Source: Pocillopora damicornis
Lineage: Eukaryota
Length of the DNA: 64,000 nt
Direction of reading: 5' to 3'
NCBI RefSeq assembly: GCF_003704095.1
Contig: NW_020844650.1
Coordinates: 124,001-188,000 of the forward strand
Positions 1 through 44,113 of the stretch are shown here, one piece after another. The notes below the pieces were generated by a model that saw only the letters and a program-made list of their open reading frames with translations, had not been told where the DNA came from and did no database searches. The position numbers and the translations under genes are program-made. Every line of letters starts with the position of its first letter. Positions within the stretch are counted from its first letter, which is position 1.

Positions 1-3000
1 AACTGCATCTCTAAATGTCGTATCCTTTCCGCTCATAACATCTACGTCCATGCCAAAAGCAACCTACATAACGACAAAGAATTGAAAATGAAGATGCTCT
101 TTAAACCATTAAAAGCAATTAACAAAGTAATTGTCCAGAAACTCATGCTCGCAGATATTTTTTTATCGTTTTCCTCTAGCCTAAGAGCAGACCCTTATTT
201 TTCGCGCCACAGGACATGAGCTTCTCCGCCCGCGGAAAGATTTGATACGGGTCGGGGAGAGGTTTTCCAGGGGTATAGCACCAGACCCCTGGCAGACCTT
301 TTGCTGATTCGCATTGCAAAAGTCACTCAAGGCCTCCTAAATATGTTTTCCTTCGGTATAACTGAGCACGAAGGATAACTTGCTGGCTGGCGGAGGGAAT
401 TTATATCAACGTTTTCCTGGTGCATGAACCGATATCAATAGATATTCAAAAATATTCACCATCAACTAGATATTAAAAAATACCACGCCGACATTCTGAA
501 ACGATATTCCGACTATTTCTGAAAACTGCAACAGATGTGTCTATGACAACATGTTTGGCGTCTAATTGTTTATGCTTCGTTGGTTTACTACAAAAAGAAA
601 TTCATAATTGGCACTCAAACACACCGTTAAGACAGTATGTACATCTTGCTGATGAGTGGACAGGAATTATGATAGTCACAAATCTTGTAGAAGTGAGATG
701 ATTTACGCGTAACGCCTGTTTATACCGGGCATAATGTTCAATGATTGGTCGAAACGCATCCTAATATTTGGAAAATAACTGTTGATATTCTAGCCAAGTG
801 ATAATCCCTAAAAGCCTTTCCTTAAAATCTAAAAACGGAGGCTATTAAGTATGTTACGTTCTAATTTCCCCTGCTTGAATCTGTCTGATTTATCATTGGT
901 TCATTATGAAAAATTCCCTTTGATCTGATTGGCTGCTATGGTTAGTTTAGTTTCGTTTTCAAAATTTTCGATTGAAATGCGCTCTGACTTGATGACTACA
1001 CAAGGCCAGCTCAGGTGTTACCTTGCAAATGATATCCAAAGCTGCATGACCAAACTGTTCAAGTATGCAAACTTCTGTTTTCCCATCGGCCATTTTGCCC
1101 AGATGAGAGATGAGGAGATCAGCCGTGGCATTAAAAGAACTCATCAAATCTTTAAGGTACCTGTCGGTGAGAAAATGATTTAAAAAGGATAGAGTGAAGT
1201 ATATGCATATTACATCTCAGGAAAATTAAATGTAAGTTCTTCACTGTACATCTACAAATGTAGCAGCAAGAAACTTACATTATTAAATAGAATATAAAAG
1301 ATGGCCAATTTTGAGCTTGGTAAAGAAATAGACAAATATGTTTTTCATCTTGTAATGAGCACGGGAAAAAGAAAACAATTCTGAGTTCACATGAGGAATC
1401 ACATATCAACTTTGTATTGGCCATGCTCACTACAGAGTCCTTGTGGCTCAGTGGTAGGGCATAGGAATGGGAAGGTCTGAGGTTCAATTCCTCATGTGGA
1501 CTAAAAATTTTTTCTTTGTCCCATGTTCATGACAAGACAAAAAACATCTTTCTCTAACACCATCATTATATACAAAATTGAAAGTGTACACAATTAACAC
1601 TTGCAAAACTAACAATACAAGCATTGCTTATTCTTTTCCTAAACATATCAATACAAAGCTCATGATAATACTAAAACCAGCTTGTTTTAAAAAAGTTTGA
1701 TAATAACTTAGCAGCAAATGTATTGTCATAGTGATTCAGGTGTACCCTATGAAAAGCAAGCCATAATTTAGCCTTTCACCCCCAAGGATGATCGAAAAGG
1801 GGTTTCTCCTTTCAACACCTTCACCCAGAAAGATTATGAGAAGAAAGGAAAATGTTCAGAAGGGGTATCTATATGGTTTGATTTAGCACCATATTTTTTG
1901 AAGCTGAAATTATAAGAGGTATGGCAGACAATGTGGGGAACTGATATTTAGATCCTAAAAGTAAAAGGGTTGACAAACTCCCAAAGTTTCCAGAAAATTA
2001 GATCTTGCTACTTAACTAGCCATACTTACTTGCGATGAAAAGCTGGGTTCATTAAGCCACGTCTTTGTTTCCAGACCTCATTATTCACATTGGTTGCCAG
2101 ACCATTACCAAGAAATCTGAAAAAATGTACATCTCATGGTGAAAAGGGCTTCACTACAGGTCACCCAAAGCCAATCTTATTGTAAATATCACAGCATTGA
2201 CTTCACATGTAAAAAGTCTTCATACAAAACTGATTCACATGTGCTACCTATGTCTTACCCAGTTCTGTGGCAACTAGAAGTAACACCATCCCTCTTGGAT
2301 GGGACACCACTCTGTGACAGGTTAACCCTGCCCCCTGCCCCCTGTTCCCTGCCCCCACCCCCTCTACTCCACCCAAAGATGCAAAATTACCATCAGCCTT
2401 CTAATTTTGTAGTTCTGGGTAGAGAGATGTGCTGTGACAGTAAAGCTAAGAATACAACATGGTGAACTTGGCCAGTACAGTTTAAACGCACAACTTTTGA
2501 TCTTGAAACCAGCCCAGATTTGTCATAATCAACCAAGTGATCTTTGCAGTAATGAACACTATACTTAAGCAGTAGTGGCAAGATGGTTTTGCGAATACCA
2601 AAACTTCAAGACCTGTGAGACTTGGTGGAAACTATTCCCAGTAAAATATCAAGTTTATGAGTAAGAACACTAGACCTTGCCCCTTAAACTTTTGTCACAC
2701 TGTCCTACTTAGATACCAAAGAGGACAAACAGAGATTCTTTACTTCCATTTCAGATCAAACTATGGTCTAAAACCTGCAATGTTCTTATACTTTTAAGTT
2801 AAAGAGTCCCTTGCTCTTGCTGGCAGAAACATGACAAACCACAATAAAAATTACACTCCCAGACACATCTGTTGGGACACCTGCTGTCTCCCCTGCCACT
2901 CTCAATGTTGGTCTACAAGGTGGTACAGAGACATTAAGGATTAACAACACTGAGTGAGGGGAAAAAAAAAACCTCATAGATGCTGATCCTATGTATGAAC

Positions 3001-25549: not shown

Positions 25550-28430
25550 AAATGTCGTCCTGTTGAGTGAGTAAGTGAGTGGGTGGCTGAGTGAGTGTCT
25601 ATGTAACAATTAGCCCACAACTGTCTCCTGCAGTCTGCCGAGTTTTACCCGATATTCCTCGCTCGTGGCTCTTGTTTGTTTTAGAATATCCTTAGTCGTT
25701 CAATGCTTGGTGGCGATTTCTTCGAATCGCTTCGAATTTTACTCAATCATTTTGGTTAAAGAATCAGGCGCAGCTGTCTAAGCATTTATAGAAAAATTGT
25801 AAGGCTGAAAGAATATATCTCAGTACTTTTTGTGGCTACTATCTCCTATAGGAGGCGAAGCCACAGATGTCGTCGAAATGAGTGAGTGAGGACCGAGTGA
25901 GTGATGGTAACAAAAGAATTTTGATATCGACTTATATTTCTTTCGTTGCACACCTTGAACATATTTGCATATTCACCGATTTCACAGAGGCTGTCTGTGT
26001 GTGCTTGGGCTTCCTGTGGTTGGACGTCAAGATAGATAAAAAAAACCATCGTTATCTTCTTCATACCCGACAACGAAATTTCCAACAGTGTTAAGGTATT
26101 TTCATTGTTACGAGCCTTGAGGCGAGCAGCAACTCTATTCTTGACGGGTTTCCTCTGTTCTGCTCGGACGGTCCTGAGCACTTCCGGGGACTTCCGGTCA
26201 CTTTTTTTTCCGAGCCATACCTCGATCTTATGAATGGGCAATGATGATCCTCTGAACACGAAATACTTTGAAATCAGCGGAAATACCTATTGTAAGCAGC
26301 GTCAAAATGGTAAATTTCACGTGACCAGCAGAGTAAGTATTCATCAAGGTGACAATCGCCTTAGCGATGTGTCTAGGGGAAGACAATGTTCTCATTGAGG
26401 CAAACCAATCAAACGCAGTACTTTTTGAAGCACAAACAAATTATCAGTCGCTTATGAAGGTGACTAATAATCAACTACCTATGAGGTAGAGCCTACTGAG
26501 GCACAAACACATACAAATAGCCTAATGTTTTCTATAGATTACAAAGACTTTTATCAGGGAAGAATCGCTTGTGGGGAGCTCGAAAACGAGGTTCCATACT
26601 ATTCTTTGCATTCGGCCCTAATTAGTACTTTCAGTAACAATTATGCATTTATTATATTAGATGGCTATGTTATGGCTTTTTAAGTCTGTAGATAATTGTT
26701 TTTATGTCTTTGATTCACATGTACGTAATTGTTTTGTTATGCCTGATGTAAAAGGTTCTGCTGTTGTTATGAAATATGATATTACCCAATTAGAGCTTTA
26801 GTTATCTTCTCTTTCACTTAAATTGAATAGTGAAATATTTTACTAGTTGAGTTTAACTCCACTATTAATGACACACAGTGTATTGTGCCACCAAACAAAA
26901 ATTCACATAAAAGAAAAAGGTCTGAAGAAATAGAAAGCCAAAGAGAAGAAAGGCTTAAAAAAGCTAGAGATTATAGGAAAAATATTTCAGAAGAAACTGA
27001 AACAGAAATACAAATTAGAATAGAAAAGATGAAAGCATATTGTGCAGTTAAAAAATTAACTCAAACTGAATTTGAAAGAAAAGCTCACTTAGAAAAAAGA
27101 AGGGTTAAATTTAAGCAACAACTTTCAGAGGAAACTGAATATGAAAGGGATCTAAGATTACATAAACAAACATTGTACCACAAGAAGAAGATATTAGAGC
27201 AGTCTAATAGGCCCTTTTGGGGAAAATACTCAACAACATTACTTGAATGAATTTGATGCATGATGGGGAGTTTCATGATCAGGAGTGGGCTAGACTAAAT
27301 ATGTCAAAATTTCACCATTCTATCGTGTATATTGTTTCTCAATGTACTGTTTGTCAAGAAACATGGCCTTTAAAATCAAAACCAAGGTCATCAGACACCT
27401 ATGTGTGTTCAAAATGTTCAAGGGATAAAAAGGGTTTGAATTCAAAAAGTGTACAAAGAAGTTTTCCACTGAAAATTCAACGATACCTTCTCCAGTTTCA
27501 CCTGAATTACAGGGTGTATCACATGTAGAAGAAATGCTTATTGCCGTGCTCTCCCTATTATGAGGGTCTAAATTAATCCAGGAGGACAAATAGGCCATTC
27601 GGGGCGTTGCATTAATTTACCACAAAATGTCAAAGAACTGGCATCTTCATTTCCCAGATACCCTTAGGGTTTATCTGTGATCATTGTTAAAATGAAGGGT
27701 AGGAATGATACTTTAAAAGACGTTATTGTAAGAAGACAAAAGGTACATGATGCTCTGTTATGGTTTGCACAAAATAATCCTCACTGTGCAGATGTAGAAA
27801 TAAATGAACAGGCATTAAATTCATTGCCTGATAATGGTGCACCAACAGATCTTTTAACTGAGGAAACTGAAGATCACATCTTATTAGAGGAAAATATTGA
27901 CCTTGATTTAGGTCCACTTACTGACAATCATTCTGAAGATACAGTGTACAAAAAATCTACTGACATAAGTAGTTTTTAACCAGTTGGTCAGCAACGGGAA
28001 TAATAGCCTAATGCTGTTAGAACTAAACTTTCAGGAAATTATCGAATGTCATGGCTTCTGTTGATGACCAGCCGATAAATGAATATCAAACATAACTTTA
28101 AGCAACTATGGCATTTCCTACTTAATTCCCAGATGGTAAAGGGGACCCTGACTAACCGCACATTAACAAGAGATGTTCCTCTTCTAGAGAGAGTTAAACA
28201 TCTGATAAAGTTTGCGAAAAAAATAAATGGTAAATGGGTTTATTGTTTTGCTAGCCACGCAAGATTTTCATATTGGGCTTTTAATATGATGCAAAGAAAA
28301 AGAACTCATGAACAAACTGGAATATCACAACCCATCTCACTCTCATCATGGTCTGTATTAGAAAAGGAAATAATTTTTTGCATGTGTTATTAATATAACA
28401 CTCCGTGCTCGCAGTACTTCACTTTCTGTA
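25550..28430 (+). mobile_element. Decayed, truncated Helitron/Helentron
   Basis: Frameshifted coding remnants: cysteine-protease-like HQGD...RGRQC (26340) and FYVFDSH (26700); charged coiled-coil (26885-27250); CxxC..CxxC (27345-27420); DUF6570-like EEMLI...[13 protein letters not shown]...IIVKMKG...VRRQKVHDALLW...NNPH; Helitron Rep/helicase N-terminal-like KHLIKFA...FASHARFSYWAFNMMQRKR. (GAGT)n microsatellite near the 5' end, as in Helentron/DINE-type elements. Boundaries are approximate. Confidence 0.8.
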
Positions 28431-29445
28431 AACTTTTAGTTTTCATCTTTTTCATTCTTTTTTTTAACTGTTTTTTTTTAATGGTTCCCTGGTTCCGGAG
28501 GTTCTCTGGCCTCAGTCTTTTGAGGGGTGCGGCGGCGAGATGTTAGATTCTTCTTCGTCTCGGACACGCGAAGACGGATCACACGAAGACGATTCACCTG
28601 AAATGCGAAGACGGACCACGCGGAGACGATTCACATCCCACACTCATCATGGTCTGCATTTTAGATGGAAATATTTTTTTGTATGTGTCACTAATATAAG
28701 ACTTGCTCGCAGCACCTCACTTTCTGCAAGAAAATTCTAGTTTTTAATTTATTTCATTCCTTTTTTTTTACCGTTTTTTTAATGGTTCCGCTGTTTCCGG
28801 TGGTTCTCTGGCCTCGGTCACTAGAAGATTCTGAAAGAAAGTGAAGCGCGGCGGCGAGATGTTAGATCTGTCTTCGCATTGACACGGCGAGCCGTGATGC
28901 AGGGTTGACCACTCGATTCTTCATTAAGTAACTTTCGTTTCTCTCATATGATAGCCAGCCATGTGGAATTCAATGAAGAGGAAGTCGAAGTCTAGTCACT
29001 ACGTCGGTTATTTCGTAAAAGAGATGAAGCAGGTGAACGAAGGTTTGATCCTAAGCTCGGTGCAGAGAGGTTTGATCCTCAGCCCGTTGGAACCATTGAA
29101 CCCGCTCAAGAACCTATGCAGGATGTTCGTCGGTTTGTTCCTGTGCCCGTTGTTGGGTTATATGATAACCAGGCAAAGAAGAAGTGCCGATCTGACGTAA
29201 TCTTACATGCTATTAGGATCTATTAGGTGTCTAACAACAGAAAGACATACATTTGCTTGTGTCCAACGAGGTCACGTTAGACGAGTCCGGAACACTTGCT
29301 CGTCGCACTTCACTTTCTGTAAGAAACTTCCAGTTTTTATTTTATTTAATTCTTTTTTTTTTTTTTATCTTTTTTTTTTTTTGTTAATGGTTCCTCCGAT
29401 TCTGGAGGTTCTCTAGCCTCGGTTTCATGAGGGGCGCGGCCCTGA
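28340..29445 (+). repeat. Three diverged tandem copies of a ~150-200-bp unit (28340-28550, 28640-28870, 29293-29445)
   Basis: Shared core tgctcg..gcac/gtacttcactttctg...poly-T...aatggttcc...gttctct.gcctc.gt...gcggc. Confidence 0.8.
28880..29292 (+). pseudogene. Truncated, frameshifted, intron-less copy of the 5' end of the methyltransferase-fold gene
   Basis: Aligns to 29444-29667 joined directly to 30066-~30226. Junction cctatgcag/gatgttcgt at 29121/29122. Frameshift from the duplicated tattagg(atc)tattagg near 29211-29227. Confidence 0.85.
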
Positions 29446-29511
29446 CACGGTGAGCCCTGATGCGGGGTGGACCGCTGAAGTTTCTTCATTTCTCTCCTAT
29501 GGTTGTCAGCT

Positions 29512-31862
29512 ATGTCGAATTCACCGAAGAAGAAGGAGAAACGGCGTCGTCTATTTCTTGAAAAGGAAGAAGCAGGTGAACGGAGGTTTGGTCCTGAGCC
29601 CGGCGAAAACAGGGTGTTTCTACTTGAGTCCGTTGAAATAGTTGAACCCGCTCAAGAACCTATGCAGGTATTTTACGAGAGGGAAAATACCCTGACTGAA
29701 TTTTGAACGCAGGTGGTTTAGTGTTAACAACTGAGTTGAAAATGTAAATTGATCACCGTAAAGGGTAAAAAAGCTGAAGTTTCGAGCGTTAGCCCTTCGT
29801 CAGAGCGATAGCGATCGCTCTGACGAAGAGCTAAATCTTAAATCTGAAACCAAACTGCATATACTCTATGCAATCTATTAAACAACACTACTTCCGTGAG
29901 ACTGAAGAACAAAACTCTAATGGATGCAAAATGCTTGTGAAGAAAGACGCCATGTTGGATACACCTGAAATTACCCGCTATACTCTCCCACTGACGCGGC
30001 ACCGCAGTTTCTTTAGAAATTTACCCCCTTTATGAATTTTGAACGGTATGTTCCTCCAATTGCAGGATGTTCGTGAGCCTGCTCCTGAGCCCGGTTTTGG
30101 GTTATATGATAACCCGGCAAAGAAGAGGTGCCGATCCGACGTAATCTCACATGCCATTAGGTGTCTGACAGAAGAAAGAAACACATCTGTTTGTGTCCAA
30201 CGAGATCACGTTGGACGAGTCTGGAAGCAACTACAAGAGAGTGGAGAGCGCCAAGCATACTTTGATGATTCACAAGTAATCAGTTCCATAGAAGATGAAA
30301 TTCGGCAGTGGGAGACTCTTCACGATAGCAAGGTACAAAGCAGGAAAGCTTCAGACCTTAATGTGTGTTATCTCGGAGGGGACAATCCTATCAACGATCT
30401 TGAGGTTCTTCTGGACAATGGCGTCCTCCCACAGAATGTTTGGGCAGTGGAGAAAAATTTTGAAACATGCAAGAGAGCACGGGAAGCCATCCGTGGATCG
30501 AAGTTAAGAAATGTCCGATTGTTTGAAGGTGACATCCTTAATTTTATGAAAGACTATGAAGGTAACTTTGATATTATTTATTTTGATGCCTGCGGTACAC
30601 TTCCGTCGGCTAAACAGAACACTCTTAAGATTATCGGATATGTCTTTCAGTATAATAAGCTGACATCTCCAGGAGCCTTGATCACAAATTTTTCATTTCC
30701 TACAGATGAGGAAGATGAGGAAGGACACAGAATAACAGAATTAGTTACAGAGTATTTAAATTACAGGCATAATAATACATCTCAAGAGGGGAATGCTAAA
30801 CGAATGCTTCGTAGTCGAAGGACTGGCGAAGACTATGGTGATTACATCACCTATCAAGTTATTGACTCTGCTTATTTATATATCCCTGCCTTAAGAATGC
30901 TCTCATCCACAAGATCAGGTCGGTCAAGCCCGTTATGGGATCAAATGTTTACAAGTAAAAGTCACTTTCTCAAGCAACTAAGAAAAATAGGTAAAGAATT
31001 GTTTGGCGCAGCCAGTAAATCAAGTCCTGACAGTAAATCTTGTTCAGTTAGTGAAAGTGCCATTGAAGTGACTGAAGCTAGTGAATCGTTCGCTACATCT
31101 ACATCTGCATCTGCAGCCAGTGAATCATTCTCCGAATGTTTTCCTTTTGCAAGGGGTGATTCTTCTGATGAAGAGCTTTCAGCACTGAAAAAAGCATATA
31201 GTGCTTCTAGTTTGTGTAGATGTGGTACTGCTTTGCTAGAAAAAATGAAAAATAATAACCTTTGCAAAGCCTGGTTTATTGAGATTTTACCAGATTGGTG
31301 GTCAACATCAAAATCGGAAACTCAGATCCTCCCGTTTTTGCTTTTGACTCATCTTCTCTCTTATTTTGATGCTTTGATCTCTGCATTTACTAATCACAAC
31401 TTTCAAGAGACATGCATTAAACCCCTTAAAAATGCCCTTGATGAGGCGAAATTTCCCGGATTTCAGAAAGCAGTAGATTTAGATAGATCAAAAAGTTTGG
31501 TTGCTGGCTTACTGTATGGCCAGATGGCATATCCATCATTTCCTGTGGTGGACAAGATGCTACGACTTTGCTACACTGGAAATACAAGGCAGATGTTCAC
31601 TGATGTTTTCATTTTTGACCAGTGTCGGTATGTTTATCAGCAATTTCCTTCCATTAGTTGTGCTGGCTTTGCCATTACAGAACCAGGACAGCAAATGGTG
31701 TTCAGAATGGTTGTGGATGGCTTAAGAAAGCACTTGGAAGACATTTGCTGTGAAGATGTCTTTCCTTATTGTGATGTTGCTAGTAAAGATCCTGTACCTG
31801 AGGGAGTGACTGGCTTCCCAAATAGTGGGCCTATGATTCCCGAAAGGAAAGAGGTGAACTAA
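29512..31862 (+). CDS. Putative class I SAM-dependent methyltransferase-fold protein, 2 exons (29512-29667, 30066-31862), ~650 aa, NLS-like N-terminus
   Basis: Phase-0 intron CAG|GTATTT...TTGCAG|GAT, supported by the spliced-form twin upstream. Rossmann MTase motif order: VCYLGG.NP (I), WAVEK (II), LFEGDI (III), FDIIYFDACG (IV), LTSPGALITNF. Basic clusters SPKKKEKRRR and PAKKRCR. Confidence 0.82.
29710..30032. mobile_element. Penelope-like terminal-repeat insertion in the methyltransferase intron
   Basis: Same family as 17507-17765, with pieces in both orientations. Flanked by the 13-bp direct repeat TGAATTTTGAACG (29697-29709, 30033-30045). Hammerhead-like core on the minus strand at 29773-29806. 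Confidence 0.75.
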
Positions 31863-34199
31863 GTTTGATGAAGGTTGCTGCTAAGAAAAACAAAACATTG
31901 ATGATTTGTGTATGTATCATTAGCATTGCAACAATTGTACTCTTTTTTGATCAAAAACAAAAGAGGTTTTGTATCTCATACTAATTGCTCCTTCTTTAGG
32001 CAATGTAATTCTTTTAACTACTTTTCTTTATGGGTAGTGATCAACGTTTTTCTTTCAGCTCAAAATGAAAGCGATTTAAACTGAATTTCTTAATATTGTG
32101 GTGAAGGAAAAACCCCTCTGTTGTTCTGTGAAGGTCCATCCTAAGGGGAAGACACTAAAACTCTTTTTTTAAGCAAAAGATGAAGCTTAAGGTAGTGCAT
32201 TTGAGGAGGGGGGGTTTATAGTTAAACTTGGTTCTTATTCAGTTTCAAACTATCAGTTATCTGTCTACAATGTGCTCTCCATTGAAGCACATTGTATTAA
32301 TATTACTTACAAATAGATACAAGACCATGTATTCAAGCACTAAAAGGGGCATTGGTTCCCAGGTGCAGGATAATTCTACCCTGAAAAGTAATTAATTGCT
32401 CCCTTTGTGATAAAGAAAAGTTTTAGTGAAGTTAAGTGACCCAAAATTTGGTTCTGCAAGTCATATAATTTGGGTGTTTTGTGTCTGAATATATCACAAT
32501 TTTATGCTTGTTGCCAGATGTAAGTGCCCAAAAACAGATACCTTATTCACTAGGAAAGGCACTGCTGCACTTAGTGAATTTTTTACACCCCAAGTGCAAC
32601 ACTTTCTTGAGTGTGCCACTCATTTGAAAAGTTTGATGCAACAAAGAATTGTTCTCTTTTCACCCTTCACACCCTCACATCAGTATCCATATTCTCCATA
32701 CTCCTCTCTATATGTTTCCATTGGTCTGGATAAGGAGAATTTGTTTTATCATCAAAGCTCAGGTTGGCAATCATTTCCTTTATTCTTGTGATATTAATGA
32801 ATGATTCAGCAGTATTACTGCACGGAGAATTTGGATGCTGGTCACTCTTAGAGTTTAAAGGGTTACTTTAACAGACTGTTAGATTAAAAGAGAATTGAAA
32901 AATAAAAATTTATATACTGAGTATATATTTTTTTATCTGTACAAAAGCATTGTACTGCTTTTTGCAACAAAAATTGAAATGCTGAAAGAAATTGCCATGG
33001 TAAACAAATCTATTGGCAGGTTTCAAAAAGAGCAGGGAAACTTCTTTTAGACTTGAAGCCAAAAGTTTTTCAAATGCTTGATATTGCCTGGCATTTTACA
33101 TCGTGTTCACCTGTATTAAACACAAAAATTTTTAAATAATAGGTTTCAAGTACATAGATGTCTTGTGCGAGGCCAATTTCATTTTCTTATTTAGTTTTGG
33201 CATTATTATGATTGCTACTATTTTTACTTTTATTCTGTCACTTGTAAACAATTCTGGTATTGAAATTTTACAAAATACTTAAACTTGTGATGCAACTAAG
33301 TATTTAGATAATTGTGAGCAAGTTAATTAACAGTAGGTTTTGGGAAGTGATGTGTGTTGGCCAGTGTGTAAATAAACTAGTTGTATGTACATGTTTGGTA
33401 TCAACTGTTAGCATTGTAAATAAAATCATTTTTGCAACTTACACTCATTAGGTAAGTTATGTTATTAATGCAATTCTTAAGTGTAAGAAAGTGTATATGT
33501 CATAATTAGTGAGTGAGTTAGTGATTGGTAATCACCTTTTTTTTTTCAAAAATAAATAAAAATAGCAATAATATCTTATGTAGAGAGAAAATTGTAAGCA
33601 GAATTCCATTATATGTAATCTGGTATAAGTAATCTATTATAGATGGAGCAAACAATTTAATTGTTTTGATATAACTTATGTAACATTATTAGTATTTTAT
33701 ATTATATTATATTATATATATTATTATATATATTATTAGTATATTCCAAACCAGGTATTGTTATTCAATATAATTATAAGCATCATTTTGTAATTTATAT
33801 ATTGTAAGAGGTTTATTTTAAGTAACATTCTGTAGTCATTGCGTTGTAAATAAATAGTTTATTATTTGTGTATCGTAGTGTTTCTGATTTTTAAAAGTAT
33901 GAATAAAAAATTTTAAAAAAGTAACATTGGTGTCTTTTGATTGTCACTTTTTTTTCTCTTCTGCACTTTTCAATTTCCAGTAGTGTCTTCTCTCAACCCT
34001 GATCTCATTTTTTTATCGAGTTTACGTGCTTAAGGGTGAGCTTGGTCCCCCCCTTCTTCATTTGAATTGGTGCATTTGAAATTATAGTAATATGATAAAA
34101 AAATCTTTATAGAGGAAGCTCCCATCACTTTATGTGGTTTTGGAGGAGGTTCAGTATGGCCAGAAAGATGTAACTATTGAAACTTACAAAACTATAGGT

Positions 34200-38520: not shown

Positions 38521-38880
38521 TCCTTTAAAGACACAGTCTTAAAGAAGAAGTAGAAGCTACTGGGAGCCGGGAATGGGGAAGAAACCCTAGAGTTCTTGGG
38601 GTTTGCTTCCCATTTCCTCTAATCTTGACCCTGTTTCTGTCAAAACACACCAGTCTCTACACCTGTTGATTTTCTTTCTCTCTCTCTCTTTTTTTTTTAG
38701 CCTGCTTCAGCATTTACATGAATATTGTAACTAAGCATGATGAGCTGTTTTGATTGGTCATGTGTTGTACTGACTTAATTTATGCATGGCTATGACGCAT
38801 AATCAGTGGGTTTATTTGATTGCGAAGCCATCGACCTACGCCATTATATTTTCGACAACAGCGCTAGCTTAGTTGGGACG

Positions 38881-39474
38881 ATGACAAAGTACAAGGAAGT
38901 CGATTACAAGGGAGGAAAAAGTCACTGGCCGCTTTGGGCGATACCTTTTCTTATAGCAATCTTGCTCCTTTTGATCGGAGTATTTATTTTGTTGACCCTT
39001 GGCGTCAAACACCATTGTTTGTTCTTCGACTGCGAACAACCGATCGACAAAGTCATCTCGCCGTCGGATGAACTACCTCGTAATGAAGACGTTGTCCTCG
39101 GCGATGATGAAATCAGTATCCACGGAGAACTGATCTTTGAAGAGGGTGCTCCAGACAGTTTACCTCCTAATTCGCATTTACGGGTGAAATTTGAAGACGT
39201 TAGCATGATGGATGCTCCTTCGGTACTTCTCGGAGAAACTATGGTCGACTTGTCGAGCTATGATAAAGCGAAGAACCTGAAGTACGAAATCAAGTCCAAA
39301 AAGCCAGATCTTGGTGGCAGTTACAGCGTTTCTGCGACATTGAACGTAGGCTGGAAGGCGAACAAAGAAGCTTGGATAAAACCAGGCGATTACATGACGG
39401 ACACACATTACGGTGTAAGGATTGAGGACAAGAAACAAGATTACAGGAGGGATATTACTTTGGTTAAATATTAG
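38881..39474 (+). CDS. Type II membrane protein with YbaY/YscW-like domain (paralog 2), 197 aa
   Basis: ATG at 38881; anchor WPLWAIPFLIAILLLLIGVFILLTLGV; domain IHGELIF...PDSLPPNSHLRVKFEDVSMMDAPSVLLGE...YSVSATLNVGW...GDYMTDT...DITLVKY. Confidence 0.87.
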   Translation: MTKYKEVDYKGGKSHWPLWAIPFLIAILLLLIGVFILLTLGVKHHCLFFDCEQPIDKVISPSDELPRNEDVVLGDDEISIHGELIFEEGAPDSLPPNSHLRVKFEDVSMMDAPSVLLGETMVDLSSYDKAKNLKYEIKSKKPDLGGSYSVSATLNVGWKANKEAWIKPGDYMTDTHYGVRIEDKKQDYRRDITLVKY

Positions 39475-40839: not shown

Positions 40840-43738
40840 TAAGGAAGTTTGTTCATTATTGCAACTCAGTATGTGCCTTTTAAACAAATTTAGAAGTGGA
40901 TGGGTATGGAGTGAGAGATGGGAGACATGGTCTAAAACAAAACATACCCATATTTAAAATTTCAGTATGTTGATATTGCTGCTAATGCTTTTATAACCAC
41001 CTCCTTAAAACTTTGGGCTAAAACATTATTTCCTCATGGGCTTTTATTGGGTGTGCAAGAGAGGAAAGGAGATAAGGGTGCAAGTGGAATAATAACTTAA
41101 ATTTTACTGTTCTTTACCCTCAGATGCTAGATGTACACTTATTCTACTCAAGGACAGATATCACTTGCAGAACATTTTAATTGAAGGATGCACTCTATAT
41201 TACATTATTAATTCATTATTTTAATGCGATAAGCACTGACAAAATCTGACTGCTCATAGATGGTAGCTTATTCATACTGTCAAGCAAAGTGTAAATATAT
41301 CCTAAATTATAACATAATAGTATTGGTGTGGTAGTGGGATAAACATTTTATTTAATGCAATTAAAATTAGACCTGCACATTTTGTGTTTTCTCCGGCCAA
41401 TTACTGTTAAGTCTATGCAGTATTTCAAAATAATTGTGTACTTTTTTTTTTAATTTTGCAACCTACTAAACTAGTTGAGTACATACAAAAAGAATCACCT
41501 TTTGTTCACTGTGGAAATCTCTGAGATAGAATTAAAAAAATATTGATTTTTTTCATAATGAGGGATCATCTATTCTGTATTATCTTTACATTTACACACT
41601 GATTATAATTGCATTTTCTCTCAGAGTGTGGTTGTATCAGGGTGACTTTTTGTTTAAAGAGTTTTAAGTTATTAACTTGGGTGATGTACAGTTTTTGGCA
41701 AGAGACTTGGACAAAATGATCAGCTTATAAATTTAGGGGTGGGGAATATCCTGGATCAATAATCAACCATCTCTATATTTCAGTTTATTGGAGGTTGGCT
41801 CCTCTGTGAGATAAAAAACAAAGCAATGCTTACTTGTTGCCTCTCTGTGTGAGAGCTTCTATAACTTTCATCTTTAATTTTGCTCGAACATTTGCATAAG
41901 GGCTTATTAGTTTTTACCCAACCAGCCTTTGTTCTAGGACTCCTGGATCATTAAATTTTTTTAATCCAAATTGAGTACTGTATAAAAGCTGGTGCTGCTT
42001 GGTTTAAATTTATTTTGATACCTCTCTCAACTGAATGTTTACAAGGTGTTGTCTTTTGTTGGATTTACTTTGTTGAAGAAACTACTGTCATTTGCATTGT
42101 AGTGTAAATTATGTTAGAGAGGCTTGCAAAAGATAATATCTTGCAAAACATGTTAGCTTTTGAATGAAATGAAAGCTAGATGTTGTGAATGTGCGAGCAA
42201 GATTATTTTGTAGTTCAAAAATAAAGAGCAATTGTTATTGGGGCTTTGTTAATCAGTAAGTGAAAGGTGTTGTCTCATCATAAGATTTAAATGACTGGAA
42301 AAGGTTGATAATTCTAAACAATATTATAGGATAAAAATGCAATTTTTATCTCAAATCTGATTTGTGATTTTCTTAAGCTAACACATTGCTTCCCATGTCA
42401 ACTTGAAAATGCTGCTCTCAAGTTATAAAAGACTATCATACAAAAACATTGAATTGATGAGAATGGATAAATTTATGAGCTGGATGTCATGTCAGCTTGT
42501 TTTATCTAGACTACCACAGCCTACTTGTGTACCAAATCACTCAGATTTTTTACTTGGCTTCATAGGATATACTTGTCTTTCTGCTTGTTGCTTTTACTGG
42601 CTAAGTAGAGTGACAACCAGAAATACATCAGAATCTGCAATACCAGGCAGATATTCCATGGTCAGGTATTTTCAGATCTGCAGTTACAGGTTAATTTCCA
42701 TTTTCTTTGGGTGTTTTCAGTTGGAGAAAACTTGAAATATGTCAACCCCTTTTCAGACAAGTGAGTTCCAAGCTCCAAGTAAAATCTTCCACATTCCAGC
42801 ATTCCCCCCTGGTTTATGATATAGGAATTTTCTTAAAAATTTGAATTTTAGCCAATTACACCTGCCATCAAGTTGTTTGTTAACAATCCCTATGGTGTAG
42901 GACAGTGATTCTGTTGAACTGTAACAATACAAGAGGATTATCACCTTTACTAGCATGAAGTTTTTTACTGGGTCTGATAGAAGAACAGAAGAACTTTGTG
43001 CAACCAGTCCAAAATGATGATAAAAATCATCTGAGTTGGAAACGTCTCAAAAAAGATATTTTGAGAGAAACAATGTCTTTGCACTTATCAGAGATTGGGA
43101 AGAAGTCAGAAATTATAATGGGGAAACCTGGTTTTGGTGCGTGTTACTGTTTTATTTTGATATTACCTCCTGTTACAGGAAAGGTTTTTATGACTGCTCC
43201 TGTAGTCCTTGGATATACCTAGATGAATTTTATTTTCTAGATAATTATCATGCTTGATTCACCCTAAATTCGCAGAGTTAAAGTTGCAAGAAACATTTAG
43301 CTGTTATTGTGGACAAATGGTATTGAAAGGCGTAAAAACGACAGCATAATGGGTATTTATTAGAAACGTCGCAACCCCCTCCCCCCCAGCCCCAATCTCC
43401 TCCCCACCTCCCGCCCATGTAAGAGAAGGAATAAGCACAAGATAGCTGCAGGGAAATTTCGATTTCATTCTCCGTGGGAGTGTAAGGTTGATAACACAGC
43501 TGGAGATACTAGAGTTATCTGGCATCTCTTTGTCTTTTATCCACTAGATTTCCTTCTGTATTGTTGTTTTTTCAACTTGGAGAACGATTTGTAGGTTTTG
43601 CGTGCAGATCCGCGCCACTCTAAGTAATATTGAGACACTGCATACTACATGCAGTTAAGCTTATTTAGAATATTGTGCAAGAAAAGTGCTATTTCAGGGC
43701 TGTTACAGCATCACAGGCCAGCACAGACGAAGGAAATA

Positions 43739-44113
43739 ATGGAAATTACTGGAAAAATAATCTTTACGGGCGGCTCTGCGCCCGATGTTCTTCCAACTCC
43801 TTCGTGTTTAACGGTGAAGTTTGAAGACGTGAGTTTGATGGATGCCCCCTCAGTCAAGATCGGCGAATCAGTTGTCGATGTCACAAACATCTACAAGAAA
43901 GGAGAACCACTGATCTTCACCATTAAGTGCCCCAAACCGTCTCCCACTCAACCAGATTACAGTGTTTCTGCCGTTTTAAATGTAGGCTGGAAACCAGACG
44001 GGAACTCGTGGATAAGGAAAGGGGATTATTTAAATGACACCATGCACCATATACCTTTGGAAGTTGGAAAAGATGCGTACAAGATGGACATCGAGGTGAT
44101 TAAGTACCGATAA
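43739..44113 (+). CDS. Stand-alone YbaY/YscW-like domain protein (paralog 3), ~124 aa; may have an upstream exon
   Basis: MEITGKIIF...PDVLPTPSCLTVKFEDVSLMDAPSVKIGESVVDV...YSVSAVLNVGW...GDYLNDT...DIEVIKY. Good-context ATG at 43739, possible acceptor atttcag at 43697, alternative ATG at 43649. Confidence 0.82.
   Translation: MEITGKIIFTGGSAPDVLPTPSCLTVKFEDVSLMDAPSVKIGESVVDVTNIYKKGEPLIFTIKCPKPSPTQPDYSVSAVLNVGWKPDGNSWIRKGDYLNDTMHHIPLEVGKDAYKMDIEVIKYR

Follow-up and report, generated by a model that had tools for sequence, protein, structure and literature searches.

A bacterial-type methyltransferase-fold gene, spliced and expressed, in the genome of the stony coral Pocillopora damicornis

The gene described here lies in a window of 64,000 nucleotides of the Pocillopora damicornis genome (assembly GCF_003704095.1, contig NW_020844650.1, positions 124,001 to 188,000), and the features of the locus are collected in Table 1. 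Its two exons are joined in frame and encode a protein of about 650 residues, to which the first contributes MSNSPKKKEKRRR...EPMQ. An earlier note, made from the DNA letters alone, had described such a gene, and its observation was confirmed overall: the open reading frame (ORF) is intact, every motif named in it was found, the enzyme body does lie in one exon of 1.8 kb, and exon 1 is spliced to exon 2. The intron begins with a GT donor (29668) and ends with an AG acceptor (30064-65); the junction 29667/30066 is present in poly-A RNA-seq contigs from three runs and two studies, with overhangs on the shorter side of 127 nt with 0 mismatches (X1), 161 nt (X2) and 28 nt (X5). The gene is thus both transcribed and spliced, as the proposed exon model had implied. 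Further upstream lies a truncated and frameshifted duplicate of the 5´ end of the gene, with one TAG inside (tblastn), and the third copy of a 5´-flank-like unit sits immediately upstream of the gene.

Table 1. Features of the locus (positions in the window; residue numbers follow the ORF 30039-31862)
Feature	Positions	Strand	Remarks
Promoter/5´-flank-like unit, three copies	28406-28516, 28704-28818, 29297-29423	+	Repeat families D1, D4, D5
Degenerate partial duplicate of the gene 5´ end	28962..29292	+	Exon-1-like and exon-2-like sequence, no intron
Exon 1	29512..29667	+	52 codons, ATG start; lineage-specific N-terminal extension with basic cluster SPKKKEKRRR
Intron	29668..30065	+	398 nt, GT..AG, nearly all high-copy repeat; skipped in RNA contigs
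Intact ORF	30039-31862	+	607 codons; contains all motifs listed in the earlier note
Exon 2	30066..31862	+	Entire enzyme body and stop codon, single uninterrupted exon; tiled by RNA contigs
N-terminal helices, aa 23-105	30105..30353	+	Shared with bacterial homologs; Y23, K28, R32, T44, R47, W91; holds PAKKRCR
Rossmann-like core strands 1-5, aa 106-225	30354..30713	+	From model secondary structure, fold matches and conservation
Family-specific helical insertion, aa 226-505	30714..31553	+	About 280 residues, between strands 5 and 6
Disordered Ser-rich linker within the insertion, aa 332-372	31032-31154	+	pLDDT <50
Strands 6-7 (aa 508-527) and C-terminal helices	31554..31859	+	R509, Y512, M519, D522, D527, R530, Y531
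3´ untranslated region, minimum extent	31863..32200	+	RNA contigs reach at least 32200

The repeat that makes up the intron has at least 2,698 first-look candidates in the coral's own genome, its 143-nt core (29826-29968) matching at 88-95%, and RNA contig depth within the intron reaches up to 27,000. A TGCAG(G) direct repeat flanks the intron, and a palindrome lies inside it at 29778-29845. The homologous locus L090 has the intron, whereas L093 and the upstream fragment 28962-29292 do not; in the intronless homolog (L093, protein P0019) the exon-1-type sequence runs directly into the body. Since in both L093 and the fragment this sequence passes into the body without a break, the intron is, as judged from sequence comparison, a later repeat-derived insertion into an originally continuous ORF, from which it is spliced out. 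Two points of the earlier note have to be changed. It had taken the first exon for an added exon that carries a nuclear localisation signal; the extension was already continuous with the body, and the repeat-derived intron split the ORF later. Its second signal, PAKKRCR, is not an acquired one, because K28 and R32 are conserved in at least 99% of the bacterial homologs. The basic N-terminal tail itself may direct the protein to the nucleus.

In the analysis the two exons were treated separately. The AlphaFold (AF2) model has a class I SAM-methyltransferase fold (pLDDT 85.6, pTM 0.88), and the model and the structural alignments show a seven-stranded sheet of order 3-2-1-4-5-7-6 with an antiparallel strand 7 hairpin. 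Foldseek with this model returned 30 methyltransferase matches at E<=1e-3, and the top VIA match was 2ift (Z 15.3, rmsd 2.6, 156 aligned), besides the RsmD-like 3p9n (Z 15.1), Trm1 (3axt, Z 15.0) and TYW2 (Z 14.2). The class I methyltransferase fold that had been read from the motifs, with its Rossmann-like core, is thus borne out by model, Foldseek and VIA alike. The VIA alignments to methyltransferases cover model residues from about 21 to 528, and therefore the strands at residues 508-527 complete the sheet; the C-terminal block of the earlier note, YTGNTRQMFTDVFIFDQCRYVY at 31572-31637, corresponds to strands 6-7 of the methyltransferase core. The helical insertion matched no known fold when folded alone (pLDDT 66; Foldseek E >1, best VIA Z 4.0), and a likeness to globins at this Z of 4.0 was taken as chance. 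At the sequence level, searches of the protein and of family profiles against Pfam, NCBIfam and PDB gave no significant match (profile searches of PDB: E >0.4); the sole match in a Pfam scan at E<=10 was Methyltransf_31 (E 0.012).

Sequence comparison places the coral gene in an uncharacterised bacterial family, which can be written as YLxGPEPxNDL...DACGP...LITNF...FDxCRY. The searches gave 355 representative matches. More than 100 coral proteins among the matches listed span 95% or more of the query at 44-92% identity and are distinct full-length open copies, with annotated genome copies in Pocillopora, Acropora and Desmophyllum. The second tier is bacterial, with 29-38% identity over proteins of about 500-560 residues, for example from Vibrio parahaemolyticus, Dolichospermum, Pandoraea and Paenibacillus ihumii, and annotated as class I SAM-dependent methyltransferase or as hypothetical protein. 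In phmmer searches the bacterial proteins were matched with E values down to 1e-56, in both the N- and the C-terminal blocks and in the same domain order; compared with the coral gene they are shorter, have neither the Ser-rich linker nor the basic N-terminus, and are single-copy. A scan of genome contigs with bacterial sequences detected bacterial copies in 127 of 185,579 species genomes from at least seven phyla; the family is rare in bacteria and patchily distributed. The family was found on three of 72,556 plasmids and in no phages, which gives no support to a phage vector. In the ESM Atlas, the clusters closest to it are 89-99% bacterial. All named eukaryotic matches were stony corals, among the matches listed (120-150 per search); as the earlier note had expected, no animal or pan-eukaryotic family was matched among them. 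In the present assembly, paralog searches with four queries found one full copy and the upstream fragment. Other coral paralogs carry fusions, namely C-terminal TPR repeats or an N-terminal HEPN_DZIP3 domain. A literature search found no paper on this family, on a methyltransferase-DUF262 pair or on a retron whose effector is of this kind. Among the entries of Table 1 in PMC4878875 is a bacterial 'sam domain-containing protein' specific to corals (Seriatopora_7060), which may or may not belong to the same family.

Over 84 sequences the consensus is YLxGPEPxNDL...NIWAxE...FDIIYxDACGPL...LITNF, and the bacterial motif string that the earlier note had given proved correct. In the coral ORF the corresponding motifs are YLGGDNPINDL, WAVEK, EGDI, FDIIYFDACG (30567-30596) and LTSPGALITNF. 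Both features that hold SAM in class I methyltransferases are present, the Gly loop (motif I) and the acidic residue ending strand 2 (motif II); the loop after strand 1 reads L-x-G-P-E-P-x-N-D and not GxGxG. G114 is conserved in 99% of the bacterial and 98% of the coral proteins, E138 at the end of strand 2 in 93% and 87%. In the motif IV loop after strand 4 (D183-A-C185-G), D183 is invariant and C185 near-invariant, and an Asn, N217, follows strand 5 in LITNF. As a lead only, C185 and N217 recall C5 methyltransferases. Of 50 positions conserved in at least 85% of the bacterial members, 46 are kept by the P. damicornis protein, which retains all 46 core residues common to corals and bacteria. 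Across 114 coral proteins, bacterial-conserved sites are retained at 95%, compared with 49% elsewhere.

In bacteria, the members of this family sit in mobile and defence islands. In 19 of 61 bacterial loci the gene directly downstream, after a gap of 10-30 bp, is a tandem-DUF262 gene (GmrSD-like; GmrSD_N); the wider neighbourhood contains integrases, N6/N4 methylases, restriction enzymes, AIPR and AbiEii. The DUF262 partner protein matches NsnA (1e-58), PD-T4-2_A and GmrSD_N. PADLOC 2.0 profiles gave no match to the methyltransferase-like proteins P0141, P0148, P0146, P0163, P0183 and P0179; since no PADLOC model matches this member, the methyltransferase-DUF262 pair is not a catalogued system. 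One protein, P0232, is a retron-type reverse transcriptase (E 5e-130) with the family domain at its C-terminus, the single such fusion seen. A DUF262 partner was also sought in the coral genome and none was found; thus the bacterial context may not carry over to the coral.

Taking fold, family and context as a joint reading, we consider it probable that this bacterial-derived coral gene encodes a methyltransferase with a nucleic-acid base as its probable target and a role in conflict. The protein would still bind SAM and transfer a methyl group, with the loop of D183 and C185 as putative active site, and its target would most likely be a base in nucleic acid. In the coral it might act in a conflict setting, involving viruses, transposons or microbes, and such a setting would explain the fast evolution, the expansion in copy number and the TPR and HEPN fusions of the paralogs. 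The fold itself does not pick the substrate, because in VIA the methyltransferases of RNA, protein and small molecules score alike (Z 12.5-15.3). Amino-methyltransferases carry (D/N)PP(Y/F) as motif IV and DNA C5-methyltransferases carry PCQ. The chemistry is not assignable, since the coral motif IV is D-A-C-G and neither of these. Two classes were tried and rejected: an exocyclic-amino DNA methyltransferase (N6A/N4C), with no N6_N4_Mtase or N6_Mtase match and D-A-C-G instead of (D/N/S)PP(Y/F/W), and a DNA cytosine-C5 methyltransferase, with no PF00145 match and with DACG and TNF instead of PCQ and ENV.

A further-reaching proposal, possible in our view though doubtful as a whole, is that corals captured half of an uncatalogued bacterial anti-phage module and turned it into expanding, fast-evolving effectors of innate immunity or genome defence. 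The bacterial enzyme would then have the tandem-DUF262 nuclease as its partner or act behind the reverse transcriptase of a retron, some coral copies would have gained the TPR or HEPN domains, and the effectors would mark or disable viral, transposon or symbiont nucleic acid. If this were true, the family would be a novel example of bacterial immunity components taken over by animal immunity and would, in addition, define a new bacterial defence system.

An active enzyme that methylates protein or a small molecule instead of nucleic acid seems rather unlikely to us. The top Foldseek matches include the protein-lysine methyltransferases PKMT1/2 of Rickettsia (similar in length) as well as phosphoethanolamine and natural-product methyltransferases, and PrmA and small-molecule enzymes reach Z values of 12.5-13.7, near those of the RNA enzymes. 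However, the highest VIA matches are enzymes acting on RNA bases (RsmD-like, Trm1, TYW2, RlmI-like, Trm5), the bacterial neighbours are defence genes directed against DNA or RNA, and one coral paralog carries the fusion to HEPN, a domain of RNase type; none of these points is decisive.

A reading close to that of the earlier note, which had proposed a possibly nuclear methyltransferase of nucleic acid or a small molecule, is a domesticated nuclear DNA methyltransferase that sets an epigenetic or genome-defence mark like N4CMT and reaches the nucleus through a new N-terminal signal; we regard it as unlikely. The methyltransferase fold would suit such an enzyme, as would bacterial homologs that lie among restriction-modification genes and adjoin GmrSD-like DNA nucleases. 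Furthermore, SPKKKEKRRR has the form of a classical monopartite signal, Lys and Arg are conserved at many positions, and residues 123-187 match mad2, the N6 methyltransferase profile and predicted methylase of MADS (E 3.5e-8). This similarity of the coral protein is local, covering 65 residues, and is absent in the bacterial homologs, which match neither mad2 nor any other PADLOC model. Against a DNA methyltransferase, in addition, no DNA methylase family was matched in Pfam even at E<=10, and nothing that could be recognised as a target-recognition domain turned up. Of the two proposed signals the second is ancestral; the paralogs in Acropora are without the basic N-terminus, and the bacterial relative in the effector position of a retron suggests a toxic activity and not a self-mark.

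The rate of change bears on whether the coral copies are still enzymes. Between close loci pairwise dN/dS was 0.93-1.42, indistinguishable from 1 in every region and in no region significantly >1; a value of about 1 also fits relaxed constraint. Simple purifying selection, for which the earlier note had looked to dN/dS, is therefore not seen across the gene, but the 46 core residues are protected: 0 of 46 core sites changed compared with 72 of 549 elsewhere (p=0.004), and in a second comparison between close loci 4 of 46 compared with 181 of 538 (p=0.0002). Outside these protected residues, change is fast everywhere. If the coral copies were relics in drift or scaffolds without catalytic activity, expressed and open but no longer enzymes, this would agree with the dN/dS values and with coding sequence that diverges as fast as its flanks (78% vs 82-84% identity to L093). 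It would also agree with the replacement E138Q at the predicted SAM-ribose contact in L093/P0019 and with C185R in 8 of the 114 coral proteins. Yet we judge it improbable: besides the significant protection of the core and its complete retention in the P. damicornis copy, there are the more than 100 full-length open copies, all 12 of 12 indels are in frame, and an open frame is very unlikely at the observed divergence, with 0 of 5000 sequences free of stops in a neutral simulation at about 20% divergence.

The enzyme reading we prefer includes a bacterial origin. In an unrooted tree the coral sequences form one clade (support 100) with a long stem among bacterial clades, and the pair P0154/P0183 is its sister. 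The contig of this sister pair is gene-dense, has 35-38% GC and carries MYND, AAA, trypsin and dynamin-like ORFs; a search for homologs of the pair returned no relatives with a name. Because the tree is unrooted, a position nested within bacteria rests on distribution and not on topology. The gene is physically part of the coral genome, which expresses it as one of its own; contamination is ruled out because the transcript has a splice junction, the intron carries a high-copy repeat of the host, the GC content is host-like, and flanks and loci are collinear in other, independent coral samples. A single old bacterium-to-coral transfer fits best, and it would have taken place before the two main lineages of corals separated. 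That there was no transfer into corals, the gene being either a bacterial contaminant or an old eukaryotic family lost in most lineages, is highly improbable: the tree is unrooted and the eukaryotic range is known from the matches listed, but the transcript is spliced and polyadenylated, its intron holds a host repeat with thousands of copies, the collinear flanks and the annotated copies recur in independent samples and in three coral genera, and bacteria of many phyla stand against stony corals alone among the named eukaryotes listed.

To our knowledge, it is rare for a bacterial gene to become fixed in an animal, and a role is known for few such genes. The present family is uncharacterised in both domains of life, and its split methyltransferase core and its catalytic loop are unusual. 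Its gene neighbours in bacteria point to anti-phage defence. The family in reef-building corals is expressed, has many copies and evolves fast around a frozen core, the pattern that a conflict gene would be expected to show. Identification of the substrate could bring to light a new modification of coral nucleic acid together with a new two-gene defence system in bacteria, and would extend the growing list of immune parts common to bacteria and animals. Should the protein be inactive, the locus would still be a well-documented transfer followed by intron gain through insertion of a repeat.

Among known systems, N4CMT of bdelloid rotifers is a bacterial N4-cytosine DNA methyltransferase that was domesticated in an animal and carries a chromodomain (PMC8885841). 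Both are genes of bacterial type with a SAM-methyltransferase fold, fixed in an animal genome and expressed, and both have eukaryote-specific additions, the chromodomain there and the N-terminal tail and the TPR and HEPN domains of paralogs here. The comparison, which the earlier note had drawn, thus holds as an analogy but not as a family relation, since the coral protein has no N6/N4 DNA methylase match in Pfam; in addition, it has the D-A-C-G loop, a core split by a 280-residue insert and a multi-copy, fast-evolving family.

The best structural matches are enzymes of the RsmD/Trm1/TYW2/RlmI type (2ift, 3p9n, 3axt, 3a27, 3c0k), with Z 13.6-15.3 and rmsd 2.6-5.7 over 156-215 residues, and these have the catalytic loop directly after strand 4 as well. 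The catalytic loop of Trm1 also ends in Gly. In contrast, no relation to these enzymes was found at the sequence level, the catalytic tetrapeptide is a different one, and only the coral and bacterial family has these N-terminal helices and this large insert.

A further comparison is with modification-linked defence modules of bacteria whose partners are of DUF262/GmrSD type, namely the type IV restriction system GmrSD, SspE of Ssp systems, PD-T4-2 and NsnA. The bacterial homologs resemble these in being arranged in two-gene operons with a matching DUF262 partner, and the coral protein has its local similarity to the MADS methylase mad2; the homologs differ from the former systems in the methyltransferase-like partner, which matches no PADLOC model. 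Finally, P0232 has the family domain at the place where the retron types RT-protease XI, RT-TIR XII and RT-Toprim I-C carry their effector, and differs from these fused-effector types in that its effector has a methyltransferase fold.

The gene lies in an intact open reading frame of 607 codons, and all motifs quoted for it in the earlier note were found in this frame (FDIIYFDACG and YTGNTRQMFTDVFIFDQCRYVY were re-translated at their exact coordinates; see the table). An upstream ATG starts an exon of 52 codons, MSNSPKKKEKRRR...EPMQ, that extends to a GT donor; behind the AG acceptor the sequence continues with DVREPAPEPG..., in frame with this exon. Sequence searches and folding took the two exons separately. 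The GC content is about 30–43% all along the window, and no compositional island was found at the gene. Parts of the stretch are contained in 18 public runs, 12 of them recorded as RNA, and contigs from four RNA-seq libraries of three studies (three poly-A selected, the fourth, X7, PCR-based) were placed on 28800-32200. The RNA contigs tile exon 2 and extend to at least position 32200. The predicted junction 29667/30066, which skips 398 nucleotides with GT..AG ends, is present in three runs from two studies, and the best contig spanning it has 127 nucleotides on the shorter side without a mismatch. Since the genome contains this join without an intron only in an upstream fragment of about 80% identity, the perfectly matching contigs represent spliced RNA of the window gene.

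Features of the gene, its surroundings and related loci
Feature	Sequence	Position	Strand	Detail
Exon 1	window	29512-29667	+	ATG at 29512
Intron	window	29668-30065	+	GT donor at 29668, AG acceptor at 30064-65
Exon 2	window	30066-31862	+
Intact ORF	window	30039..31862	+	607 codons
FDIIYFDACG	window	30567-30596	+
YTGNTRQMFTDVFIFDQCRYVY	window	31572-31637	+
Palindrome inside the intron	window	29778-29845		32 nt
Intron core	window	29826-29968		143 nt
Frameshifted, truncated, intron-less duplicate of the gene 5´ end	window	28962-29292		exon-1-like and exon-2-like sequence contiguous
Promoter/5´-flank-like unit, three tandem copies	window	28406-28516, 28704-28818, 29297-29423		about 110 nt; the duplicate sits among them
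YscW ORF	window	38806-39474	+	E 1.1e-5, above gathering score
YscW ORF	window	43649-44113	+	E 1.4e-3
DUF6570 ORF	L090 (coral)	649-936		about 2 kb upstream of the homologous gene
P0183	L007	4692-7385		N-terminal MYND zinc finger
P0232	L005, L006	2012-5386, 176-3550		1,124 aa
Tandem-DUF262 gene about 10-30 bp after the match	L012, L019, L020, L034, L035, L040, L043, L044, L048, L050-L052, L056, L058, L063, L065, L067, L081 (bacterial)			conserved two-gene arrangement in Bacillota

A word-indexed search returned 198 proteins; most of the best 120 cover at least 95% of the query with 42–92% identity, and those of the 120 with a species name come without exception from stony corals (Pocillopora verrucosa, four Acropora species and Desmophyllum pertusum). 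An exhaustive search of cluster representatives gave 355 matches. Below the corals follows a bacterial tier with 29–38% identity and lengths of about 500–560 amino acids, in which both the N- and the C-terminal blocks are matched; it includes P0141 from a Bacillota MAG, encoded between a Schlafen/AlbA_2-HATPase gene and a GmrSD_N gene with an adjoining integrase, and P0148 from a Chitinophagales MAG. Named bacterial members, among them Vibrio, Novipirellula, Brevundimonas, Paenibacillus, Mycolicibacterium, Sorangium, Nostoc, Dolichospermum, Pandoraea, Alteromonas, Clostridium and others, are annotated as "hypothetical protein" or "class I SAM-dependent methyltransferase", and the nearest ESM Atlas clusters are 89–99% bacterial. 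A consensus built from 84 sequences of corals and bacteria, YLxGPEPxNDL...NIWAxE...FDIIYxDACGPL...LITNF...FCDxP...FDxCRYxYDWxPT, confirmed the bacterial motif string given in the earlier note.

In a maximum likelihood tree of 61 sequences (LG+C20, quick search, unrooted), all 20 rows of the coral tier form one clade with a support of 100 and a long stem (1.11), within which the robust corals (Pocillopora, Desmophyllum and the window) are set apart from Acropora. This clade is sister to the proteins P0154 and P0183 (support 88) and lies beside three well-supported bacterial clades, with a retron fusion in a deeper clade. These relationships show that the gene originates from a bacterial family. 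The proposed transfer is supported by the bacterial relatives and the coral monophyly; nesting inside the bacteria is not proven by the topology since the tree is unrooted, and the direction from bacteria to coral is inferred from the distribution, at least seven bacterial phyla versus only stony corals among the named eukaryotes. The presence in both major coral lineages suggests that the gene was acquired before their split. The contig encoding P0183 is gene-dense with 35–38% GC and contains AAA ATPase, trypsin-like and dynamin-like ORFs; P0183 may stem from a symbiont, a protist or a large virus. Elsewhere in the window, two ORFs match YscW (Pfam), a type III secretion lipoprotein chaperone domain that one would not expect on the scaffold of a coral; they may represent a further bacterial-like gene or a tandem pair.

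The Pfam search gave nothing but Methyltransf_31 (E 0.012), the NCBIfam search gave no significant match, and the best PDB match had an E of 0.72 with the single sequence and of about 0.4 with family profiles. The AlphaFold2 model, built from the 84-sequence alignment, has a mean pLDDT of 85.6 and a pTM of 0.88, with one disordered Ser-rich stretch (aa 332-372). With Foldseek, 30 PDB chains passed E<=1e-3, and almost all belong to the class I SAM-dependent methyltransferases. An independent structure search (VIA) returned the RsmD-like proteins HI0767 (2ift; Z 15.3, rmsd 2.6, 156 residues aligned) and Rv2966c (3p9n; Z 15.1, rmsd 2.8, 163 residues), Trm1 (3axt; Z 15.0, rmsd 3.4, 215 residues) and TYW2 (3a27; Z 14.2), followed at Z 12.5–14 by RlmI-like, PrmA, Trm5 and many small-molecule enzymes; the alignments span about residues 21 to 528. 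The confident model and both searches bear out the methyltransferase fold, and the predicted structure shows it to be of class I with the SAM-holding features conserved. Strands 1–5 are modelled at aa 109-221, and the previously described C-terminal block (508-514 and 517-527) joins this sheet as strands 6 and 7. The helical insertion of about 280 residues in between, folded alone, had a pLDDT of 66 and no match (Foldseek E >1, best VIA Z 4.0). RNA, protein and small-molecule methyltransferases reach practically the same Z-scores, so the fold does not point to any one substrate.

The earlier note had regarded the first exon as added to the enzyme. Contig depth reaches 27,000 within the intron (29712-30053) and is about 5 over the exons; the intron sequence has at least 2,698 first-look candidates in its own genome, where its core has 88–95% matches on many contigs. 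A TGCAG(G) direct repeat borders the intron. In the coral locus L093 (protein P0019) the gene is a single ORF, in which the basic N-terminus MWRSLKKRTSWRRLFRKR... runs through ...EPIQ/DVREPAAEPG... into the enzyme body; L090, which is 97% identical, carries the intron at the same position. From the intron-less L093, the upstream duplicate and the repeat content we infer that the extension was first part of one ORF and was later split by a repeat element. The idea of an added exon is thus not borne out, since the extension was originally continuous with the body; the intron looks like one gained by transposable-element insertion and is spliced out. The basic N-terminus is confined to the subclade of the window, and Acropora paralogs begin about 10 residues ahead of the conserved Y23. 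PAKKRCR does not hold as an acquired localisation signal either, because K28 and R32 inside it are at least 99% conserved in bacteria. One RNA-seq run has an in-frame GAA insertion after 29525, within the basic SPKKKEKRRR, which is a length polymorphism of this putative signal. The DUF6570 domain is common in Helitron-type elements, and the DUF6570 ORF near the L090 gene shows that the locus sits in transposon-rich DNA.

The P. damicornis assembly contains only one full copy of the gene, and more than 100 distinct full-length open copies were found among stony corals. L090, L092 and L093, all from other coral samples and either orthologs, alleles or segmental duplicates of the window, are collinear with it through the flanks (96.7%, 92–97% and, in the 3´ flank, 82–84% identity). 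Their Nei-Gojobori dN/dS values against the window are 1.42 (dS 0.019), 1.37 (dS 0.044) and 0.93 (dS 0.207), no region differs significantly from 1, and the coding sequence diverges at the same pace as the flanks. Purifying selection is thus not visible in dN/dS, but the frame is kept and 46 core positions, common to the window and the bacterial consensus, are protected. Simulated random substitution left a stop-free frame in 0.08% of trials at 10% and in 0 of 5,000 at 20%, and the 12 indels that separate the window from L093 all preserve the frame. None of the 46 core positions is changed in L092 versus 72 of 549 others (Fisher p 0.004), and in L093 four of 46 versus 181 of 538 (p 0.0002); among 114 coral proteins, retention is 95% at the core positions and 49% elsewhere. 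Of the 50 residues conserved in bacteria, 46 are present in the window protein, including G114, E138, D178, D183, C185, N217, R509, D522, D527 and R530 (ORF numbering). Since L093 carries E138Q, some coral copies may be impaired. Together with the RNA contigs, these data show that the gene is expressed and has a protected core. A frozen core surrounded by sequence that evolves at a nearly neutral rate fits a conflict gene and likewise partial relaxation.

Many coral paralogs (P0036 and P0040 among them) have three C-terminal TPR repeats added, apparently the only reason why Desmophyllum P0035 was mis-named "Sperm associated antigen 1", and a HEPN_DZIP3 domain (E 2.5e-43) is located at the N-terminus of the paralog P0095. 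In bacteria the family is rare: a scan with one genome per species found it in 127 of 185,579 species (about 0.07%; 78 loci kept). Of 72,556 plasmids three carry it, and of 50,697 phage records none. According to our own crude gene calls, a GmrSD_N (DUF262) protein of 760–790 aa is encoded directly downstream in 19 of 61 loci, mostly Bacillota, on the same strand with a gap of 10–30 bp, and upstream in two more. This partner matches NsnA (down to 1e-58, two stretches) and PD-T4-2_A of PADLOC, a catalogue of anti-phage defence profiles. Also encoded near the gene are integrases, N6/N4 DNA methylases, restriction enzymes, AIPR, an AbiEii-type ATPase, UDG, a pAgo-associated-like Schlafen protein and PDC-S53. 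Since none of the bacterial homologs matches a PADLOC model, the methyltransferase-fold and tandem-DUF262 genes are a candidate uncatalogued defence pair. The window protein alone has a local match (E 3.5e-8, aa 123-187) to mad2, the predicted N6 methylase of the MADS system. In the bacterial protein P0232 the methyltransferase-fold domain follows a retron-type reverse transcriptase (PADLOC RT-Protease_XI, 5e-130, aa 244-590), where fused retron effectors sit; we found no description of this retron architecture in the literature. A GmrSD_N gene was not found in the coral genome. The coral gene belongs to an uncharacterised, defence-island-linked family.

Judged from the fold and the conserved SAM-holding features, the protein would bind SAM, and methyl transfer would take place at the D183-A-C185-G loop after strand 4, which is unlike (D/N)PP(Y/F) and unlike PCQ. 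A nucleic-acid base is the most likely substrate, a prediction to which we give an even chance; the leads for it are the best structural matches, the large number of conserved Arg and Lys residues, the nucleic-acid-directed genes next to the bacterial homologs, and the fusion to HEPN. The fast evolution, expansion and fusions would further suggest that the protein takes part in a conflict with viruses, transposons or microbes.

The observation made in the earlier note is confirmed and its interpretation partly supported: most likely, an animal has here domesticated a methyltransferase-fold gene of bacterial descent. Our literature search found no papers on this methyltransferase-fold family. 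A 2016 survey of horizontal transfer in corals contains a coral-specific "sam domain-containing protein" of bacterial source, Seriatopora_7060 (PMC4878875), which might belong to the same family. In concept, N4CMT of bdelloid rotifers (PMC8885841), to which the earlier note had likened the gene, comes nearest; it belongs to another methyltransferase family than the coral gene.
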